NCBI GenBank assembly: GCA_009103225.1
Contig: RHPI01000797.1
Coordinates: 681,064 to 745,063, forward strand
Length of the DNA stretch: 64,000 bases
Direction: 5' to 3'
From: Chlorokybus atmophyticus
Taxonomy: Eukaryota; Plantae; Mesostigma and Chlorokybus algae
The translations under genes were made by a program, and so were the position numbers. Positions 25,433 to 38,966 of this stretch are shown here, piece by piece; position 1 is the first letter of the stretch; each line of letters opens with the position of its first letter. The notes under the pieces are model-generated. The model saw only the letters and a program-made list of their open reading frames with translations, was not told where the DNA came from and did no database searches.

Positions 25433-28400
25433 ATGGCGTCCGCCTCCGTGATCTCGCAGTTCTTCATTCTTTCACCGCGTGGCGACACCATCATCTCCCG
25501 AGACTGTAAGCAAGCTGCACTGTTCACATCTTTCAAGCTTGTAATGGAATAGCAAACCTTGACGCTGCTTTCTTTTTATCCAGAAAGGCTATAGTATAAT
25601 TCGCGCAAAAGCCATGCACAGCATCATGGAAATGGACACTGTTGTCTTCGTCTGCTCAGTCATTAGTGCTGTCAGGACTTCATGCGTCACAGTGATCATT
25701 CAGTTTTGATTTGCGATAGGCTGTTTGGTTGATGGGCATTGCTGTGTCAACACTTTGGGTTCATCTGCTGTATTCAAGGATGCAACTGTGCCAATGATAC
25801 TGCATGAGACTGTGCCTTGAATTTGTTGCAAACTGGGTGAGTGTCTGTGCATTGTTGGCGATCGCAGGTCATGTTTGGTTACTCTGATCATGACGACACA
25901 ACTATGCTGTTGTGCTTTTGCTAATAGCTCAAGTGGTGCATCCGCTTGGCAATTGTTGTATCATCCTTCCTCACCCAACTCAGTACTTTTACTGCATGCA
26001 TAGCAACTATCATCCCCCACAACAGATAGAGGGGACATCCCGCGCTCAAGCTCCGAAGTCTTTTTCCGCAAAGTCAAGTTTTGGCACGCTGACACCGGCG
26101 AAGAAGCCCCACCCGTCTTTGTAAGCGTCACTTTGCATGCATTCACGTAGCTGTCAGTGCATGCATGTCTCTCTGTGTGTGCACTCGCATGTGGGTGTTT
26201 GCAAGCGTACTCTGTACACATGTGTGCGCACAACGCGTGCGTACATGTCTTTGTGTTGATGTGCGCGCATGCACATGTGCGTACGTCAACTCCAAGTGCC
26301 TGTGTACCCAGCGGATACACAGGTGCCTGTGTGTACGCTCGTAGACAAGCACGTGTATGTTGACTCGTTGTTAAGTCGCCTTGTAAGTCTTTTATCCTTT
26401 TCATGAGCAGATTGTGGATGGCGTGCACTACCTGCACGTGAAGTTGTCCAACTTGTTGCTCGCGGCCACAACGCGGGCCAACGTGTCTCCGTCGCTGATT
26501 CTGGAGCTGCTCAACCGCATGGCTGGTGTCATCAAAGACTACTGCGGGGTCCTCTCCGAAGACGCCATCCGCAACAACTTCGTGCTGGTGTACGAGCTTC
26601 TTGACGAGATCATCGTGAGTGAGTTTTACCACTTGCATGGCAGTGTCTTGTTCATCTTGCAGCAACTCTGACAGCGACTAGGACTTGTGCTGTAATGTTC
26701 GCACAATCTATCCTAATCATCTAGTTGGGGATTGCAAGTGAGGGCGTGTGTGTATGGCAGTCGCTGCACACAATGCAAAGGGTTATATTAGGCTGGTCAG
26801 TGTATGTTGTGGAACATGGCTGTTCGTATCATATGATGGGTTGTTTGTGATTAGACGAGGTGACGCTATCCATTGCTAACTATTCACTGCTGACTGATGA
26901 GAAATTATAGCAAGCAGTGCTGTATGTTTGATGTGGGTATGTGTGCCGCAGGATTTTGGGTACCCGCAGACGACTTCAACAGAGGCGCTCAAGGCATACG
27001 TGTTCAACGAGCCCGTGCCAGCAGAGCCCCCTCCTAAGCTGCCCGCCGCTGCGGCAGGCATATTCAATGTACAGCTGGCTTTTGTGTATCACCGAATGAA
27101 AACACTTCTTGCGTGCATTCTTACTGGACACTTTCGGCCCTTTTCTAATTTTTATCCTGTTTGTCAGCAATTGAAAAACAGAGCGCCGGTGACGGCCGTG
27201 ACCAAGTCGGTCATCGCCAACGAGCCTTCGGGGAAGAAGCGGGAGGAGATCTTTGTCGATGTCATCGAGAGACTTTCCATCACATTCAACTCTTCAGTAC
27301 GGACACTTGCAAACCTCATGTGTGCATATATGTACTACAAACCTTGTGAGTATGTCACCAAGCCCTCTGTCCATGCAGGGCTACATTATGACATCGGAAG
27401 TGGACGGGATGATACAGATGAAGAGCTATCTCTCCGACAACCCTGAAGTCAGGATCGCTTTGAACGACGACCTCGTGGTTGGGAAGTCATCGCGAGGTTA
27501 GAGTTGTTTTCTTTCCGGCAGCACAACCTGCTTGACACAAGCACACGTAGCCAACACATGTGCGGTGGTTGCTTGGCTCCTGCTTTGCCCAATTGCTCTG
27601 TTATTAACATATTGCGCCATCTAAGGGCGTCCAGGTACTACATAATGTAGTGGCCAAGTACTCAAGTTGAGTGCCTAGTAAAGTTGGCTTACACAGTTTA
27701 TGTTGTGGAAGTGCTTGTTGTCAACTCCCACTTGCAGAGTCTATGTGACCAATTAGTAAGCGTGCAGGTGCTCAGGTTCTCACCTAAGTCAGTGTAGGGT
27801 ACAGGAGTTACTGAACATCAACATAGTATATGTGTAATTCAGTGTGTTGATGAGTACGCAACAGGATAGAGCTCTAGCCCAACCAACGTTATTGTGTGGA
27901 CAGGGCCTGCGTGGAGTTCGGCTGGAGGGGTTGTGGCGCTTGACGACTGCAATTTTCATGAAAGCGTGCGTCTGGATAGCTTTGAAACCGAACGAATTAT
28001 CGCTCTGGTATGCCTCAACTGCCCACAGTGGCCCCCTGCTCTGTGAGTAGCAGATGGCGTTCTGCTGATTGCATATAATGCTTGCTTTGCATCAGTACCC
28101 ACCCGATGGAGAGTTTGCCGTAATGAACTACCGCATCACGCAAGAGGTGAAGCCGCCGTTTAGGATATACCCTCATATAACCGAGGCGGGCGACTTCAAG
28201 GTACAGGAATGTAGTTTCGTTTGTCTTTGGTGGTGCGCGTTGACTTGGTAGCGCAGCATTCAGCTCACATTGCGCTGTTCGCCTCAGTTTGATGTGGTGA
28301 TCACCCTGCAAGCAGACTTTCCCTCCGCACACGCAGCTGCTGGCGTGATTGTGCGCATACCCATGCCCAAGACCACAACAAGGTGGATTAAGATGGCAAT

Positions 28401-29072
28401 GCAAAGTATGGGCTTGGAACAGCCGCTGGCATGTGTGTTGACATATTTGTTATGGTGTCCTTAACCTTAACTGTTCATGTACTGGCCTTTAGGGTGAGCT
28501 GCGATACTGGCGGTGCGTCTGGCCAACGGACGGAGTTCAAGGAGGCGACTAAAGTTGTGGAATGGGAGTTTAAGAAGGTTGGTTACCATCCAGTGCACTG
28601 GCATACAAGTGCTGGTCTTTATGACAAACACCTTGATCATGTGTTCGAGCAGGCACAGGGCGGGTCTGAACACTCATTGCGCATCAAAGCGACAAGCAGT
28701 CAGCAAAACACCGGTACGCTGTTGTTGTTCGCCTAGAAGCTTGTGTAACAGCTCTATCGACTGCTGTTGACAACCTGTCTGTCAATTTTGCATGCAGCGA
28801 ATGTGAAGAAAGAAATAGGGCCCATCAGCATGAACTTCTCAATACCCATGTACAGCGTGTCCAACTTGCAGGTGAGATTGACTGCAAGCGCTTTGGTATT
28901 AGTGTTATTGGCAGGTTGTGGCTGTGCACATTAGTCTGGGAAGGGACACAAGCGATGGTCGTGTTGCTGGCAGGTGCGGTATTTGCAGATAATGAAGAGA
29001 TCCAAGAACTACAACCCTTACAGATGGGTGCGATACGTCACAATGACCAGCTCCTATGTGTGCAGACTGTAA
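25433..29072 (+). CDS. AP4M1: AP-4 complex subunit mu (13 exons)
   Basis: [132 protein letters not shown]. All junctions are GT-AG. Confidence 0.95.
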
Positions 29073-29735
29073 AGTAACGATGTTGTAGTGTTGACTGCTG
29101 TTTGTGCACTGACCATCGGTTTGGCAACGGTGTGGCAGCTCTGTGCAATTGGTGTATGGCTGTTATTCGTTGTCCAGTCATATGTTTGTTCAGACCAATA
29201 GCTGGGGCAAGCGCATAAACTGCAGTTTTTCTGCGCATTGTTGCTTGGCTTTATGCACGCACAATATGCAACCACCACATTGCGATGTGTTTGCTATAAC
29301 CAAAGCTTGGCACCACTGGTGCACCAGTCCTTTTGCGACCGGTGTGGACTGAAAGCCAGTGTCGTGAGGAGGCCGCCAGTTCCAACTTCTTATGTGGAGT
29401 GCAACCTGGGGTTAGAGGCAATAATCTTCTACAAGCTGGTAAGGTACTGTAGTTACATTGTTCCGGATGGTAGCGGGTGCACTGCTGCTTGTGGTGCTTC
29501 ACATTGAACCCTGCATTTACCACAAGCAATACTTACGTGCGACGGATTGTGCTATGCTGCACCATGTTGCATTTACACAGTGTAGCGAAGACATGGATTG
29601 TATACATGGCAGTCTTGGGCGCATGCGCTATTGCTTGTATTGTGGCGCGAAGCAGTGCATTCATTGTCTGGTATGCGTATGCATGTGTCTTGCCACAGAT
29701 AAGCTGCCCTTGCTTGCAAACAATGTACTCACCTC

Positions 29736-32700
29736 TCAAGTAACGCTGGCCAGCAGTGACTTCAGTTTCTTCATTTTGTTGTCCTGTTAAGCATAGCCAC
29801 AACGGTCAGGTCTCATTTAAACTGTAAATACTAAAGCTGGAGGGCTTCTCTTCGACGTCACGCACCTGCTGAAGAGCCACCATCCTTTGTGCTGCCTCTT
29901 GAAGCTGCGGCTCGCATCTCTGCTGCACCTCTTCCAGGTACTTCTCTTGTTGGCGTTCTGCAGGTAATAAAAGTCCAGAGTTGACATCAATAAGGAGCAT
30001 GTACTTATTGCTCTTTATCTTGACCAACATCATCAAACAACGGTTCTAGATTGCTTGCGTGTGTATATGCATGGTGCGTACTGTGCTTTTTAGTTTGGAG
30101 CAGCAGGGTTTGCGCAGCATCTTCACACATTGTCTTAAGCTGCCCGTACTCCTGCATTTTCTTGTCATACTCCGCCTTGAATCGCACCACAAGTTCTTGA
30201 ACACTGGCGCCATGCTCTGCACAAGCAAACACGTCCTTCATGAGGGTGGTCGGACAGGTATGGTGCAAGGTTGCCTTTGATGTCACAATCAAGTACCTTG
30301 CAGTTGCTTGTCCAAACCATGTAATGTCCTCTTTGCCTGCCGGAGTTGGTTCTCCCTGCGAATGCAACATGTTGGTTCTGGTTAAGTTCACATGTGATGC
30401 AGTCAGCATACGTTTGTTCATGAACAGCTGTCTCGGTGCGTTCCAGCTGGTCTTTGACAGCGCCTTGCACCGCTGTTATGACACCATTCATGCGTGCTTG
30501 GTTCTCCTTTCTGGCCTTCTTCTTGATCTTGTTCAGCATGGCAACCAAGGCCACGACCTCACCCCTGATGACAGCTGTGGAGATTAGTGTAGCGCACGAT
30601 ATGCACATGAGGTGCTCATAACGCAGATAATGGAAGCTTGGCTGAGCGCGGAAGAGTTAAATACGCAGCTTGAGCTTACCCTTCCCCTTCGCCATCCAAA
30701 ACAAGCTCTGCATTGCAATGTCCTCAGTCAGTCAGCGCAAGGTATGTTCTGGCCATTGCATCAGTACTACAGTAACATCTTACTCGCCTTTGAGTGTTGA
30801 GCTGCCATTGGATGTCTGTGCAACATCGTTGTCTTCATCGGAACTGGACATCAGTCTTTTCCGTTTGATTGTCAATGGAGATGAAGAGAAAGCCTTCATG
30901 ATTGGCAGCGTTCTTGCTGAAAAATCCACTCGTAGACCTGCGGCATGTATACTTGGTGCAAAACGTTCCTCGCTGTGGTCTTCATCGGACTCACTCCCAC
31001 TGCCAGCATCGTTGCGCAATGTGGGCACGCTTGGGCTGTCTTCCCGCGCCCAATCTTGTGGCACGTTAGGGATCAAGCATGATCATGTGATGGGTGTTGG
31101 TTTGGATGTCTGTCAGCAACTTGACAGCAAACACTGACATGACATATACATCCAACAAGCATCACAGCTGCTGACGTGACATGCCTCGCCCAACACGACC
31201 ACAACAACCAGAGAGGATATTGGTAACTGGAAGGTGGGATGTGCAGTGGGAGCGACAGCACTGGTGTTGATGGCAGATCTCAGCTGCAAGCCGGGCTTCT
31301 TGCGGGATGGGCCGCGCTCTACAACCGGAAGGGGACTGGACAGTGTGTCGGGTTGTGAAGGCATGTTGTCAAATAGTGGTGCCCGAGCAGGACCTGCTTT
31401 GCTTCGCTTGTGTATCAAGAAGTGATTTGAACAATCATGTGCATCCTGCCTGCGCTTGCCATCTGGGACATCTTGGTACCGGTTCTCCTTTTCAGCCTCG
31501 TCAGCATCACCATGTTGTGCTGTCTTCAATGGTGACAACGCCTTGTGTGGGTGACTTCGCAGAGAGGCAGTCTTGGCTTGCTGCTCCGTGTGCCGTGCGC
31601 CAGCACTTGCAGAAGCAGCCAAGTCGCTAACAGATTGCGCAGATTGCGCACTGATTGGCCGCTGCTGGTCATGTTGTGGTTGTTTGCCACCGGGTGGGGA
31701 AGGAGGGGAAGGCCACTTGGCCTGTAGCTCCGCTTGCTCAGTTTCAGCCCCTTGGAATGTTACCAGATCATCTGCAGGCTGTGCAGTGGTGGTGCGGAGA
31801 TGATGCTCTTCGTTGGGTGCATCATTGCCACAAGACTGATCTTTGCCTGTTGCCTGTTGTTGGATGTGCAAGCTTGCACAGATCTGTGTCGCCTTCAAGC
31901 TTACTGCACCTGATTCAGAGACCATACGTACTTCGCTGAATTTTGTGGTGCGCACAGCTGTGTTGACCGTAGCTGCATTATCGGTCAAAGGCCAGTCCAC
32001 TGTGTGGCCTCTGCTGGCTTGCTCGAACAGTGTAGAGGCGGGTGGTGCCTGCCGCTCAAGGACTTTTAACTGAGAGTCCTTGATTGCAGGTTGCTCTCTA
32101 GCAGCATGGGACGGTTCTGCTCGGCTTGCACCAACTGTGGCAGGTTCATCCGCGCATCGCACATGATCGGACACAGTCGTTTGATGCATGTGGAGTTGAC
32201 TGGCGTCTGGCTCAGGCGGGGTACTTGCTTGCGTAGGCACCTCCGCTGCATGTTCTGGTGTTGCACATAGTTGATCAATGTCTAGCTGCGTTGCTGGCGC
32301 ATCGTCAGCTTGCAGATCAGGCCTGTTTGTTTTGGGTGGTGCATCGCGCGGCAAGTCACGGGGTTTGCTGCTCGGTGTCTGCACTGGTAGTTTGCTGCGT
32401 TGCAGTGCAAACTTGCCAGCGCGAGCCGCTGTGCTTGGCTCTGAGTCCTTTCGCAAGGCTGACCTGGGCGTGCTTTTGCTGCGTGCTCTGGCTCCCAACG
32501 TGCTCCTCCTCTGCCTGCTTGTGCTGCGCACAGGCTTAACCGCAGGTGCTGTCTCCTTGCTGGTCTGGGCTTCGGTGGCTGCGCGCTTGAGAGCTGCAGC
32601 TATAGATTGCCGAGCTTGTGTAAAAGCACCACTATGTAGCGAACTGGAACCCGGTGCAGCTGGCGTAGCCACAGGCTTGCTACGTGCCTTGTCATCCAGC

Positions 32701-35700
32701 TTGGCGTCAGAGTTTGCTGCCGTTCTGATTGGACGAAGCGTAGGTTGCTGGTTGATGACAACGGCTGGCTCAGCTTCTGATGGTATGTCGTTGTCTTGAG
32801 TTCCGCCAGCAAGAATGCTGTCCAGCAAGTTGGTGGTCGCTGGCTTTGGCTTCCCAAATGCATCAACTGATTGCACAGAGGTGCGCGGCTGCTCGACAAT
32901 GTGTTGGCTGGAAACAGGCTCAACAGCCTGGGCTGGCCTGTCCGCTGGCTGACCATGGGTACCTGCAGTTGTTGGTTTGGGCAAATCATTGAGACGCGGT
33001 GACCTTCGCTTGGGCCGGGCGAAGATGTCAGCAACAGCGCCAGTAGCAAATATCCTGCTTGGCCGCCCTGACTTACAGTGCTCGCCACCTTCTGGAGGTG
33101 ACACCTTATCTGGTGCAGTCCTTGCCGAAGTTGTGCCAGCTTGTGGTGGATGCTCGGCGGTTGGCGGAGGAGGAATTGCGAACTTCCTCGATCGTCCACG
33201 GGGCCGTCGCTGTTGAGTCATAGGGACAGGCACAGCTGGCTGGTCAGCTGCAAGACCTTGCACGTTTGCGCCCTTGCGAGGAAGACTCGGTGGTGCAGTG
33301 ACCTGAGGGATGTCAGCAGGGCTGCGTTGTCCGTCAATATGTGCACCGGCATGCTCTGCTGAGGGTAACATGTCATGAGCTTCGGCAACATGGTGAGCGG
33401 TCGGCAAGATAATTGGTGGTGATGGATGGCAGGGTTGTGAGGCGTCAATCAGTAAGTCATCACCTCCGGCAGGTTCTGCAGGAGCAGGCGCAGTTGTTTC
33501 CTTCTGCACATCAGACTTGTCTACAACTGTATTTCCTTGAGTCAGCGGCTCCACCGGGTTGCTGTCAGGCTCTATGGTGTCACGGTCTGCAGATAAAGCC
33601 TGCTCCGTTTGCAACAACACCACAGACAACCGCTCGCTGACAGTAGGCTTGTGTGTTGGTTTCAGAGTCAGAGCTGGCATGTGCGAGCTTCGGCGGAGGC
33701 GCGCGGGTGCTGGCATGATGCCCACAGAGCATTTGACGCCAACCAGGCTGACATCACTGGTTTGAACAGCAGCACTTGGCGAAAGCAGTAAGATGGCATC
33801 TGCACCATCAGCTTCCTTAGGCACCCGTATTTCCTGCACGTAAACACCTTGTGTTGAAAGGTGCTCACGTGAAACAGTAGTAGTAACACCTGTTTCTCAA
33901 ATCTTTGGCTCACCCGTTTCAACATTTGCTGGCGTATGCGAGGGACAACCATCCGCGCTATTGCAGCTGCATCTGTTCGCGATATACACTGTAAGCAAGT
34001 TTAGATGATGTGGATGTGGACAAGACCACTGACCAGCATCGGTTCAGTGTTTGTTGCCAGGTCTGTGACATGCTGCATGCAAGTCATTGAGCCCTTGCAG
34101 TCAGAGAACTCACCTGTTGGAGCCGTCTCTATCCTAAGCAACCGTAGATCGGTGTCTGGTGCTCCACCCTGTGCACAAGATCTATTGGGCTTGGACCTTA
34201 TGCGTAAACTCTAGAAGCTGCAGCTTGAACTGAAGCAGCCATTGTCAAGTCCACACCTGATTGCAGTTGACGAGTTGCTCTGGTACTTTGCGTAGAAAGA
34301 GTTCAAGCCCATTGGGTGAGTGCTCTGCCAACAAGTCGCGATGTCATGCGAGTCCGTATCAAACACCAGCAGAATTTTGTGCACGCATGACCGGCCCCCT
34401 TCCAGTACGCTGCAGGCAAACTATTGTGCAAATGCTGTGAAAGGTTGAGCATGGTGGTGCATACCTTGTACTGCGAGCACCTGACTGTACAGTACATCAA
34501 CAGCATAGGGCGAGTCATCTCCATCCTCCTGTGTATGGGCATTGTGTCCCAATGTCACTGCGGTGTCCGCTATGTGGCCAACACTGGTTGCAGCTGCCAT
34601 ATGCTGAAAACCGCCTTACCTGAACCTTGGAAGCTTGAACACGCAAGGTCAGATGGTCGGCGCCAAAATCTATCCACTTGTCTGTTCCCAATGCCTCAAA
34701 GTCTCCAAATGCAGCTCGCAGCGCCAGGAAGGAGTTCACCCTGACAGAGTTGTTTGTGTTTAACACGTGCTAGCTACTGATGCACAACTATAGATCTTAC
34801 GCAAAAAGGAGTGTACAAACAGGTTGGCTAATTGTGTCATGACTGGTGACACTTACGTTGCCTTCTCTTTCTGTGCAGCATTTATCCCGTTGACGATGTT
34901 CCTCAGTGCTTGCACCAGTCTGGGCTTCTTAATCTCAAGAAGCTTGTGAAAAGCCTTGCGCGCTTCTGAAGATGTGAGTATATCTTTCCGCTGCAACAGG
35001 TCCTGCTGTCTTCTTGACAAACGGTACAGCAGTTCTGCAAGGCTAGCTTGCAGGTTGTAATCTCCACAAGCAGGAAGAATCTTGAACACTGAAGCACTGC
35101 GAGTTGAGGCCTCACTTCAATCAAGGTCAAGAGTTTTTCGCATTTCTACAGCTGTCCGTCTGTGCGCTTACACTGGACAACAACCCACAAGCCCCGTTGG
35201 CTACATGCAAGGGATGCCAACATGTTGGCAAACAACAGTGTTGACGTCAATTGCCCCTGGTTGCACTCCCCACTCCCCTCCTAGAGTTGCGAAAACACGT
35301 ACTTGGGTTTGATGTTCTGAAGCAGCCACTCCTGGTTCCTTGGTGACTGTGTGACAAGCTCTATCAGCGTGTCTGCCACAGCTCGTCGTAGTGCGAAGTC
35401 TCTCTGCTGCAGCAGTACTAGCGGTAGCCGTGCGATGAACACATCCCCCAACTTCGTCTTGGCTGCAAGCGCACAAGGGTGATGTCATACTAGGCATCCA
35501 GAATTTCAATGACAATGGAAGCAACAGGGAATGTAGCAAAATGCCACTGGCATATGCAGGGTTATTGCGAGTGCCTTGCAACATGAACATCTATGAACAC
35601 TTCACGACAAGGCCAGCCATAGCTGCCAGCATCGCGCAACATGTCACCTTCCGTTGTCTGGCACAAGTCTTCTACAGCATTGAGCACACTTTCCGCGGCA

Positions 35701-36079
35701 CTCAAAGCCTGGACGTTGCCGCTGCTCCGTGCCAGAAGTGTGTCGAAGGTTTCTGCAAGGACTTGGACAATGTTTGCGTCCAGCAGCAGCTTGCCAGCAG
35801 ACGCTTTCAGAGATAAATTGGACACGGCTTTCAGGAGACGCCTCAAGAGTCCATAGTCACTGTTAGATCGCCGCTGCGCCTGCATATGCATATGCAAAGC
35901 ACTCACAGAACGCTTGATAGTATACAGTGCTTGCCAGTGTCTGCCAACCCCCAGCTGTCACTGAAGTTCAGAAGCCTTACCGCAGCAATTGCGCCTGTCA
36001 GCCGACGTACACAGGAAGCATTGAGGGTCACCGGTTCATTCTTCTCAAGCGCAACCACCAGATCTGGCAGCTGCTCCAT
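29736..36079 (-). CDS. SYCP2-like: SYCP2/Red1/ASY3-type meiotic chromosome axis core protein (ARM-like + PH-like + long disordered linker + C-terminal coiled coil)
   Basis: ILPACGDYNLQASLAELLYRL resembles the SYCP2 ARM motif (ILDAGDYDLQVGITEALCRM, from memory). VNSFLALRAAFG..KWIDFGADHLTL resembles the SYCP2 PH domain (VFTFPC..FWIDFN). A ~900-aa S/P/T/A-rich exon (33839-31113) follows, then coiled-coil exons ending DNKMKKLKSLLASVT*. Some middle exon boundaries (33990-34260, 30600-31150) are unresolved. Confidence 0.72.
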
Positions 36080-38966
36080 GACTTCCACTGGGATGTCACC
36101 GGGGCTTCATCCGACGTGGCGCTGAATAGCAAGAGTCTTGTTGGTAGCCGGTACACATTATACATGGGTAACTTTCCATCAAGCAGCTCAGCTGTGCTTG
36201 ACTGCAATCATTAACAGCGTTACAGTAGTGCTGTGCACGTGCACAGCATGTTGTCCAGCATGTGATCACATACTGCACTGCGCTTGGGTACATGGCACTG
36301 TACTAATGATGAAGACGTTGTCGACGACTCTCACAAGAATAAGGTGAAATCTGGGGCACAAACACTGGACGTTGCAACAAACGTGTGCAATAGCACTAGT
36401 GCTGTGTCCCTCTCTTCCCCGCAACACTGCACTCATTTAGCACGGCAGGGTTCACTGGTACACTACAAGAACGTCCAACAGCCAATATCAAGTTGACACA
36501 GAAGGCCTTCATACATGTCACCTCTAGTCTGCATGCATGCAGCGCACGTGCGTGCTGTCATCAGCTTCACTGGCAGCAAGGCCGTCACAGCCACTGACGC
36601 CCGCAGCGCACATGCACAACCATGCACGCGCAGAAGCCCAAAGTACCCGCAATTCCAACCAAATAGCGCTAAGCTAGCGAGGTCTTCACAACCGCCACCA
36701 CCACCGCCGCCGCCGCCACCGCCAGCACAGCCACCACTGAGCACCACCGTCACCGCCAGCACAGCCACCACTGAGCAGAGAGTACGCCAGCATGGCGGGC
36801 AAAGCGCCACGGTCAACAATTGGACACGGACCGAAGTCTAGTCGGTCTTGATTCGCAATGTTTGCGCGAGAGGTAAGAATGACACCAGTCACGAGCTGTC
36901 GTTTGTAATGACGAGGAAAACACTTAGCCGGCGGCAACAAGAGGTTGCATGGCGAGAGACAAAGCAGCGAACTGCCTACGTTTCGGTTTAGCTTGAGCTC
37001 AGCCTGAAGCTTGCCGCTGGCATGGTGGCGGGACGAGGCTGCGTGGCTTGCGTAGCTTTTCTTACCCCAGCTTGCTTAGGCTGGCATTGCATGGTGCAAG
37101 TGTGCAGCTCATAATGTGCCTGGTGTGGGTCTGCGGGGCAAGCGCTGGTGGTGACTGTGGTGCTGCGCAGCTTGGTCGTACTACTACGGCAGACACGTTA
37201 CATGCCGCTGGTTTTTGATGTATATAGCCTTATCAGCCCATACCCCGGTAAGCGGCATGCTGGTTGCCTTGCGTTGTTGCATGTTGGAGTTTGGCAAACG
37301 CTTTGCTGGTTGGGTCTGTTCTCAAGATCTCTCAGCACAACCTGCTGAAAACGTGACACTTGTTGATGTTGGCACAGCATGCTGATGTCAACAGCCAGTT
37401 TCAAAGCAAATGTATAGCAGATTAAGAGTCACCACACGCCGTATGTGGTAGTCTGCTGTAGTTTTGTAACCAACTTGCGTAGAAAGCCGAGTACTGGCAG
37501 TACTCTGATAGAAGGTTGCTCCCATTACGCTTCCAGAGACAACGGTTCGACTTGCCATGCACAGCTTACAAGCAACAGCTGCTTGACGCTGGCCAGCGAT
37601 GCCATCCACTGTGTATATTTTATACGTTCGTGTATGCGCCACTTTGTAGTTGAAAGACCCAGAACTAACTTGGTGTTGTCATGCTGCATGTACATGGTCT
37701 GGTTGGAGCAGCATTGTTAACAGATTTAGAGTCTCCACCAATGCACTTTACGCAGCCAATTGTACGTATATGCTCAGCCTGTGCTGTTGATACGTTACCT
37801 CGAGCCAAGTTTTCGCCTGGTGTAGGTACATGCACATGCGTGTGCACGCAATGCTGCCATTACACAACCATGAAACTACACATGCAGACAACTCAAGAAC
37901 AGCCACAAGCCAAACATTACGTGTGCTGGTAGCCATGCAGACAGCCAGCTTATGTGCCGCCATGTGTTGGATATGAAGCCAAACTGCGCGTAGACCTACT
38001 ATCCATGCAACCAAGGTACACTTAAGGTGCGGCAACCGCGCAAACTCGTGGTGCATTTATTTGTGTGTACTAAAGTGAGATGTTGACATCTGTACAGTGC
38101 AAGCCTGCCAAGCAAACTCAGAACCAACCAACGTCCTGCTGGTTGCAGCCCTGCTGCTATGACTGGCACCTCTGCACCTCCAGCCAGTCCACAACTAACT
38201 GGCGATCAGCTTGCAAGCGTTAGTTGCAGTATCATAGCCTTTATGCTGTTCACAGCGAAGATCATGTTAATGCTGTTCACTCTGCGCAGGTTTACTGAAC
38301 AGAGTCGAACTTGAAGCTGGCTGAGAAGTGCTTACCTCAGCAACGGACACAACACATGGAATGAGTTGATAATTGGACTAATGCCACTCCACAGACTGCG
38401 GTATGTCGAAGTGGTACACTGCAGATTGATGCCACGCAGCATGCGAGCAGCAGCACATGCAGTAGGTATAACCTGAGCGGCCGGCATGGGCATCGTCCGA
38501 TCAGCTGCATGGGCTGCTGCACGTTACAGACAGATCAATACGTATGTCCATTGCTGGTTGTTAGTGCTGTGTAAAGAAGTCCTAAATATCAATGTGTGGA
38601 ATGCTTGCAGATTGGGGACTTGGGCCAGCCCATAGTCCTTGTCTTAGTTGTGCTTGTCTCGGCTGCGGTTGTGTTTGGATTGACTGTGCCTATTGACTAA
38701 GTGTATGTGCATGCGTGCCATTGTGACCCACACAACACCCCTGTAATTTGTGCCTACACGAAAGTGCAAGCTGTTGGTGCGCGGACCAAGCAGCTGCTGC
38801 TATCCTTTGCATGCCCTTGGTCAAAGCAGTCTGCCACGAAGCGCCTGCCCTTGCCAGGCATGACTTTTCTTGTCATCACCCAGTACAACTTTTGCCAGCA
38901 GTTCACGCAGTGTCTACATGACGCAACTGGCATGCAAGTGACACTGGTAGCAGTCAGAGGGCTTGC

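Follow-up and report, generated by a model that had tools for sequence, protein, structure and literature searches.

A Very Probable ASY3 Orthologue of the Meiotic Chromosome Axis in Chlorokybus atmophyticus, with the Ancestral SYCP2/Red1-Type Architecture

Proteins of the SYCP2/Red1/ASY3 family form the core of the meiotic chromosome axis. SYCP2-type proteins consisting of an armadillo-like (ARM) domain, a PH domain, and a coiled coil have been described across eukaryotes, including Marchantia and Chlamydomonas, and the loss of ARM and PH from ASY3 was found to be limited to Spermatophyta (Tromer et al. 2021, PMC8131943). In the words of West et al. (2019), plant ASY3 [quoted passage not shown] and what seed-plant ASY3 kept and gave up was called a "mystery." In the Chlorokybus genome paper the core meiosis-specific set was reported as present, RED1 included; none of the papers searched names both Chlorokybus and ASY3. 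Here, we describe a 17-exon gene in a 64-kb stretch of the Chlorokybus atmophyticus genome (contig RHPI01000797.1; the whole stretch is called the window below). Very probably, this gene is orthologous to ASY3, which forms the axis core in plants, and has kept the full ancestral architecture of the SYCP2/Red1/ASY3 family.

Land-plant ASY3-like proteins (Marchantia MARPO_0021s0152/BBN01381, Selaginella XP_024532214, Diphasiastrum KAJ7558258, and Calypogeia CAM6083050) have the same order of parts as the Chlorokybus protein: first an ARM-PH-like module, next to it a K-x-S-hydrophobic-G...P-x-P motif, then a long and variable linker, and at the C-terminus the ASY3-like coiled-coil region. These bryophyte and lycophyte orthologues are collinear with it at equal spacing and show 36-45% identity over exon 4. 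The Chlorokybus protein is longer (~1497 versus 950-1226 amino acids) because of an 871-codon linker that has no detectable similarity to the orthologues, whereas its N-terminus is ~20 residues shorter and its coiled-coil similarity is weak. Seed-plant ASY3 (Arabidopsis, 793 amino acids) belongs to the same orthologous family, since Pfam PF20435 was built on ASY3 and is borne by the land-plant relatives of the Chlorokybus gene. However, the ARM-PH module is missing from seed-plant ASY3, whose closure motif lies at the very N-terminus within residues 1-50, whereas 366 folded residues precede the candidate motif in Chlorokybus. Mammalian SYCP2 has in common with the Chlorokybus family the ARM-like plus PH/Spt16M-like N-terminal fold, the motifs GDY.LQ....E.L.R and WIDF, and a nearly equal position of the closure motif (395-414 in SYCP2, ~398-409 for the Chlorokybus candidate), although the identity between the SYCP2 structure (PDB 5IWZ) and an orthologue model is only ~16%. 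The partner of SYCP2 is SYCP3, and the REC8-binding motif found in fungi and plants is apparently missing from SYCP2. Budding-yeast Red1 forms homotetramers, and no sequence-level match between it and the Chlorokybus exons was obtained.

The gene lies on the minus strand at window positions 29736-36079 and has ~1497 codons without in-frame stop or frameshift, frames and phases agreeing throughout. The ATG at 36079-36077 is the earliest in-frame ATG past a stop at 36107-36109, and a TGA at 29738-29736 closes the coding region; an earlier note on this DNA, made from the letters alone, had given both ends exactly. Two public sequencing runs match the locus, one of them with short contigs identical to the window. 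In the second, which comes from a relative, one 6756-nt minus-strand contig is ~93% identical overall (range 90-95%) and spans exons 1-15. It skips 14 introns (12 GT-AG, one GC-AG, and one U12-type AT-AA, after 1-base boundary shifts) and therefore derives from spliced RNA. Exons 1-15, which the earlier note had left to be fixed by cDNA, are defined by this contig; because the compared stretch ended at 30100 (6000 bases compared), exon 16, exon 17, and the 3' boundary of exon 15 were placed by canonical sites, frame, and homology rather than by reads. Exons 1-9 total exactly 1098 nt, that is, 366 codons. The exons, for which the relative's transcript and the reading frame are the basis unless indicated, are as follows.

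36079-35981, minus strand: exon 1
35879-35648, minus strand: exon 2
35462-35303, minus strand: exon 3
35096-34857, minus strand: exon 4
34740-34620, minus strand: exon 5
34528-34465, minus strand: exon 6
34324-34257, minus strand: exon 7
34168-34114, minus strand: exon 8
33972-33914, minus strand: exon 9
33833-31221, minus strand: exon 10 (871 codons)
31055-30788, minus strand: exon 11 (268 nt)
30707-30680, minus strand: exon 12 (28 nt)
30564-30412, minus strand: exon 13
30355-30297, minus strand: exon 14
30216-30082, minus strand: exon 15 (transcript to 30100; end placed by the GT at 30081)
29957-29866, minus strand: exon 16 (placed by canonical sites, frame, and homology)
29783-29736, minus strand: exon 17 (placed by canonical sites, frame, and homology)

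One transcript thus carries a 366-residue ARM-like plus PH-like module, a short conserved motif, the long exon 10 with its disordered linker, and, toward the C-terminus, helical exons that follow the order of the ASY3-like coiled coil. Together with the collinearity of the orthologues, this bears out the proposal of the earlier note that an SYCP2/Red1-type layout is present in one gene. The parts are distributed over the exons as follows.

34857-36079, minus strand: armadillo-like helical part (exons 1-4)
33914-34740, minus strand: PH-like (Spt16M-like) part (exons 5-9)
31221-33833, minus strand: disordered linker, judged by composition (exon 10)
30680-31055, minus strand: acidic, serine-rich linker end (exons 11-12)
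29736-30564, minus strand: putative C-terminal coiled-coil region (exons 13-17)

Four short motifs had been quoted by the earlier note as signs of the ARM-PH module. Three-frame translation placed all of them on the minus strand, in frame, and within exons bounded by splice sites.

35018-35065, minus strand: GDYNLQASLAELLYRL (exon 4)
34662-34679, minus strand: KWIDFG (exon 5)
34478-34507, minus strand: YAVDVLYSQV (exon 6)
34281-34307, minus strand: LELFLRKVP (exon 7)

The open segment of exon 4 was compared with 1.84 billion representative proteins by phmmer, which gave nine matches, those to ASY3-like proteins having E-values of 1e-7 to 4e-4. Two of the nine were TPR proteins with eight matched stretches each and were discarded as repeat noise; the remaining seven align once, at a corresponding place (residues ~170-260 in the long proteins). 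These specific matches are proteins of Diphasiastrum, Selaginella, Calypogeia, and Marchantia and otherwise unnamed fragments. That the closest relatives come from bryophytes and lycophytes is in keeping with a streptophyte alga as the source. The full-length land-plant matches bear the PF20435 (ASY3-like) domain at their C-terminus with 46-48 bits and E ~1e-12 (gathering threshold 25.7 bits), and some carry the UniRef label "ASY3-like coiled-coil domain-containing." For four land-plant ASY3-like proteins, precomputed annotation also lists Pfam PF26290, which may be a recent model of the N-terminal module.

When land-plant ASY3-like proteins were searched against the window by tblastn, exons 2, 3, 4, and 5 were matched in order. 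A family hidden Markov model (HMM), made from an alignment of five land-plant ASY3-like proteins, was run on all 2475 six-frame open segments of the window and recovered exon 2 (E 1e-11 within the window), exon 3 (1e-6), exon 4 (8e-20), and exon 5 (0.01; profile 264-295). All matches of this model in the window share the minus strand and follow the order of the profile, exons 2-4 covering profile positions 55-255, and at the junctions 2/3, 3/4, and 4/5 the residue counts equal the profile positions exactly. Exons 6 and 9 are collinear with profile 304-321 and 368-381, exon 7 retains the family-invariant S...LE, and exon 4 retains all family invariants (K, LP, CGD, Q, S, E, and RL). The alignment stayed shallow at five sequences, as word searches with the Diphasiastrum N-terminus and the five-protein alignment added one protein only. 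Exon 5 yielded no usable match when searched by language model. Judged from these comparisons, the similarity of the N-terminal exons to ASY3-like proteins exceeds chance.

The link to SYCP2 runs through this orthologue family. Among all PDB sequences the five-protein profile found a single significant entry, 5IWZ, the mouse SYCP2 N-terminal structure comprising the ARLD and SLD domains (E 6.9e-5; profile 90-307 corresponding to SYCP2 103-332). In the alignment, GDYELQVGIVEALCRM and FWIDFNLGSHTLSFYI of SYCP2 stand opposite CGDFqLQASi.EilyRL and KWVNiG..hLSFYI of the family. When the exon-4 block was turned into a profile of its own, headed by the window exon, 5IWZ was again the only match (residues 213-282, E 3.5e-4). 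The Diphasiastrum N-terminus was modeled with AlphaFold2 from the five-sequence alignment (pLDDT 74.5, pTM 0.75). The model consists of 13 helices and, behind them, a beta sandwich with a closing helix; the stretch matching exons 2-4 is all-helical, and the beta strands and C-terminal helix at 258-367 correspond to exons 5-9. A Foldseek search with this model ranked 5IWZ first (E 1.2e-10, TM 0.58/0.65, 401 columns), the next matches being generic armadillo and DH/PH proteins from E 3.8e-4. The comparison of predicted structures suggested by the earlier note thus favors SYCP2, with the orthologue standing in for the window protein, and an SYCP2-like ARM-PH module, as the note had claimed, is supported by both profile and fold. 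In addition, a language-model search with exon 4 placed a chordate cluster bearing PF18584 (SYCP2_SLD) first (score 0.90, 194 shared features), which we regard as a lead only.

At the other end of the protein, exons 13, 15, 16, and 17 map in order to profile 1013-1058, 1086-1119, 1129-1155, and 1161-1168, and the residue spacing across exon 14 and the 15/16 junction equals that of the profile exactly. The stretch of the profile matched by exons 13-17 is the part of the orthologues that is matched by PF20435. The exons of the C-terminal coiled coil proposed in the earlier note are thus in the same transcript and collinear with the ASY3-like coiled coil, but taken singly their similarity is weak, and the coiled coil itself is putative.

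Several points weigh against an ASY3 orthologue of the ancestral type. The E-values of the coiled-coil exons within the window are only 0.2 (exon 13), 3 (exon 15), and 4 (exon 16), and no single exon reaches the PF20435 threshold. On single exons, the Pfam models SYCP2_ARLD, SYCP2_SLD, Red1, and ASY3-like gave no match (E up to 1 and 10; noise only), and PF18581 (SYCP2_ARLD) and PF18584 missed all five full-length land-plant orthologues (E up to 0.1), so that the direct comparison with SYCP2 profiles proposed as a check by the earlier note gave no match. Likewise, phmmer with single exons 2, 4, and 5 against PDB sequences gave no SYCP2 match. The plant lineage seems to lie beyond the range of PF18581 and PF18584. 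By these single-exon and orthologue searches, the protein is not formally a member of the SYCP2 families in Pfam; it is placed with SYCP2 by remote homology and by predicted fold, both by way of the orthologue family. The fold evidence comes from the Diphasiastrum orthologue rather than from the Chlorokybus protein itself, and the transcript contig belongs to a sister lineage, the label RNA for its run being recorded only as a guess. Meiotic expression, axis localization, and all binding steps are read from the biology of the family, and sexual reproduction is not known in Chlorokybus (Chlorokybus genome paper).

A descendant of the SYCP2/ASY3 family might now serve a non-meiotic role in Chlorokybus, such as that of a scaffold for mitotic chromosomes or kinetochores, comparable to kinetoplastid KKT17/18; we consider this improbable. 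It would agree with the fact that sex has never been observed in this alga and that the fully spliced transcript was found in a small transcriptome-sized run of the relative, probably from a vegetative culture. However, low-level transcription of meiotic genes is common in bulk cultures. Repurposing of the SYCP2-type family is documented (KKT17/18; Tromer et al. 2021, PMC8131943); on the other hand, the closure-motif-like and coiled-coil parts are conserved with the land-plant ASY3 orthologues.

Comparison with the relative's transcript revealed different rates of change along the gene. Exons 2-5 differ by 3-6% and the coiled-coil exons by ~3%, whereas exon 10 differs by ~7% with in-frame indels and exon 11 by ~10%; exon 10 is, with exon 11, the fastest-evolving part and forms the linker. 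Among the differences listed, 9 of 11 in exon 10 and 25 of 33 in exons 10-11 taken together are non-synonymous, and all three in exon 15 are synonymous. The mostly non-synonymous change of the linker, and a putative 5' leader with nine upstream ATGs, might be taken to indicate a decaying relic in an asexual lineage, which is transcribed and no longer selected for function. We consider such a relic even less probable than a non-meiotic role. Fast linkers are normal for axis proteins, the indel lengths in exon 10 add up to multiples of three, divergence in the folded exons is two to three times slower than in the linker, the invariants of exon 4 are all kept, and ~1497 codons over 17 exons are read without stop or frameshift through splice sites that are all usable. 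On the sequence evidence, this pattern of divergence is that of a functional gene with a fast-evolving linker.

A pair of adjacent genes, an ARM-PH gene (36079-33914) and a separate low-complexity/coiled-coil gene (33833-29736), is contradicted by the transcript and has nothing in its favor beyond the look of the open reading frame track, where only the big low-complexity exon stands out, as the earlier note had said; one contig crosses the exon 9/10 junction (33914|33833) and the other covered junctions and joins the N-terminal, the 871-codon, and the C-terminal helical exons, whose assignment to separate transcripts the note had named as the finding that would speak against it, the reading phase is continuous with no in-frame start or stop between two genes, and the land-plant orthologues have the same fused layout.

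If the gene is an ASY3 orthologue with an SYCP2-type N-terminus, a HORMAD-binding closure motif may be expected directly behind the PH domain, where the proven closure motifs of Red1 (346-362) and SYCP2 (395-414) are located. The earlier note had pointed to a region just after this domain, and a conserved linear motif is found at the expected position.

33705-33740, minus strand: GVKCSVGIMPAP, candidate HORMAD-binding closure motif (exon 10 residues 32-43; protein ~398-409)

This segment aligns with IGIRKVSIGLRVPLP in Diphasiastrum, TGVRKSSMGILIPLP in Marchantia, and TGKTSIGIAVPLP in Selaginella and with a shorter form in Calypogeia; the aligned cores in the lycophyte and liverwort orthologues are ...RKVSIGLRVPLP, ...RKSSMGILIPLP, and ...KTSIGIAVPLP. 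Ser, Gly, and Pro are invariant, and in every orthologue the motif stands directly behind the PH domain. Conservation and position strengthen the closure-motif idea, and binding of the candidate to a HORMA domain would follow from it by analogy. A profile of the motif found nothing in PDB. PF20435 found nothing in the motif region of the window or of the orthologues, and therefore no tool-based link to the seed-plant closure motif was obtained; in the literature, no printed sequence of the ASY3 closure motif was found. It is known that Arabidopsis ASY3 residues 1-50 bind ASY1. A similar K-I-S-I-G core is presumably present near the Arabidopsis ASY3 N-terminus.

A plausible if somewhat doubtful proposal is that K-x-S-hydrophobic-G...P-x-P (GVKCSVGIMPAP) represents an ancestral streptophyte closure motif homologous to the N-terminal one of seed-plant ASY3, that seed-plant ASY3 arose by clean loss of everything upstream of it, and that Chlorokybus, in which no sex is known, retains the full ancestral set of ARM-PH module, closure motif, possibly a Red1-like REC8-binding TTNLLDSIL, and coiled coil.

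The long exon between the candidate motif and the coiled coil corresponds to the disordered exon of ~900 residues described in the earlier note (33833-31221) and has a composition typical of disorder. It is rich in Ala, Pro, Ser, Thr, and Gln (14% Ala, 12% Pro, 9% Ser, and 8% Thr, with 0.1% Tyr and 0.2% Trp), and hydrophobic residues account for 10-30% of each 50-residue block. No Pfam match was found in exon 10, and a word search with its 927-residue open segment returned neither a homologue nor a self match, the protein itself being apparently absent from the collection. A weak candidate for a cohesin-interacting motif (CIM) is located in this exon.

32802-32837, minus strand: TTNLLDSILAGG, weak candidate CIM (exon 10)

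The published CIM peptides of Arabidopsis ASY3 (180-206) and yeast Red1 (546-569) both align best at the TTNLLDSIL spot of this segment, with shuffle p-values of ~0.1 and ~0.5, which are not significant and make it a lead only. The resemblance of TTNLLDSILAGG to the CIM of Red1 (..NILDTIFG..) and of ASY3 (..DVLRSKLWEILG..) is not statistically significant. Regular-expression and alignment searches for a CIM counterpart in the land-plant orthologues gave nothing consistent.

Considering what is known of the family (West et al. 2019; Feng 2017; 2026 Corbett-lab preprint), the ARM-PH module may help to position the protein on chromosomes in meiosis. As a closure motif, the segment around GVKCSVGIMPAP would be captured by ASY1/HOP1 through the HORMA domain, the linker may bear a REC8-binding motif, and the coiled coil would form tetramers, either alone or with an ASY4-like partner, which are joined end to end into the axis filament.

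The absence of the N-terminal module from angiosperm ASY3, as stated in the earlier note, agrees with both West et al. (2019) and Tromer et al. (2021). The same note had viewed the gene as an ancestral-state bridge between SYCP2 and ASY3; this reading is correct but not new, as Tromer et al. (2021, PMC8131943) had published it before. The Chlorokybus gene is a well-documented further member of a family whose evolutionary pattern has been known since 2021, and current views are not overturned. It provides, for the base of the streptophytes, an exact, transcript-supported model of an axis core protein and confirms there that the ARM-PH module is older than its loss in seed plants. A conserved motif in the position of the Red1/SYCP2 closure motif would help to account for which parts of the protein seed-plant ASY3 retained and which it lost. 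The gene is, moreover, a further argument for hidden sex in Chlorokybus.

Some details of the gene structure deserve mention. The intron at 31056-31220 (minus strand, 165 nt) has no GT-AG solution and is of the U12 type with AT-AA termini; it has ATATCCTC as its 5' splice site and a branch-like CCCTAAC at 31071-31065, ~10 nt before the 3' end, and is skipped cleanly by the relative's transcript. The frame is kept only with the 165-nt cut, and AT-AC termini were rejected, as they break the frame. The GC-AG intron at 30708-30787 (minus strand) separates the 268-nt exon 11 from the 28-nt exon 12. An alternative 3' end without the last intron, with a stop at 29806, was judged less likely; the stop at 29736 is favored over this read-through because the 15 residues of the last exon (..MKKLKSLL..) match profile positions 1161-1168 and so continue the family profile at the correct spacing.

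The relative's transcript reaches ~247 nt 5' of the start codon, for which window 36080-36338 is the candidate leader. If collinear with the window, this leader has nine upstream ATGs in 259 nt, like translationally controlled meiotic mRNAs; an extra 5' intron is possible. At the other end, the contig runs 2176 nt past 30100, of which the coding part needs only ~160 nt (window ~27900-29735 for the excess), and the remainder is either a 3' untranslated region of ~2 kb or run-on into an adjacent transcript.

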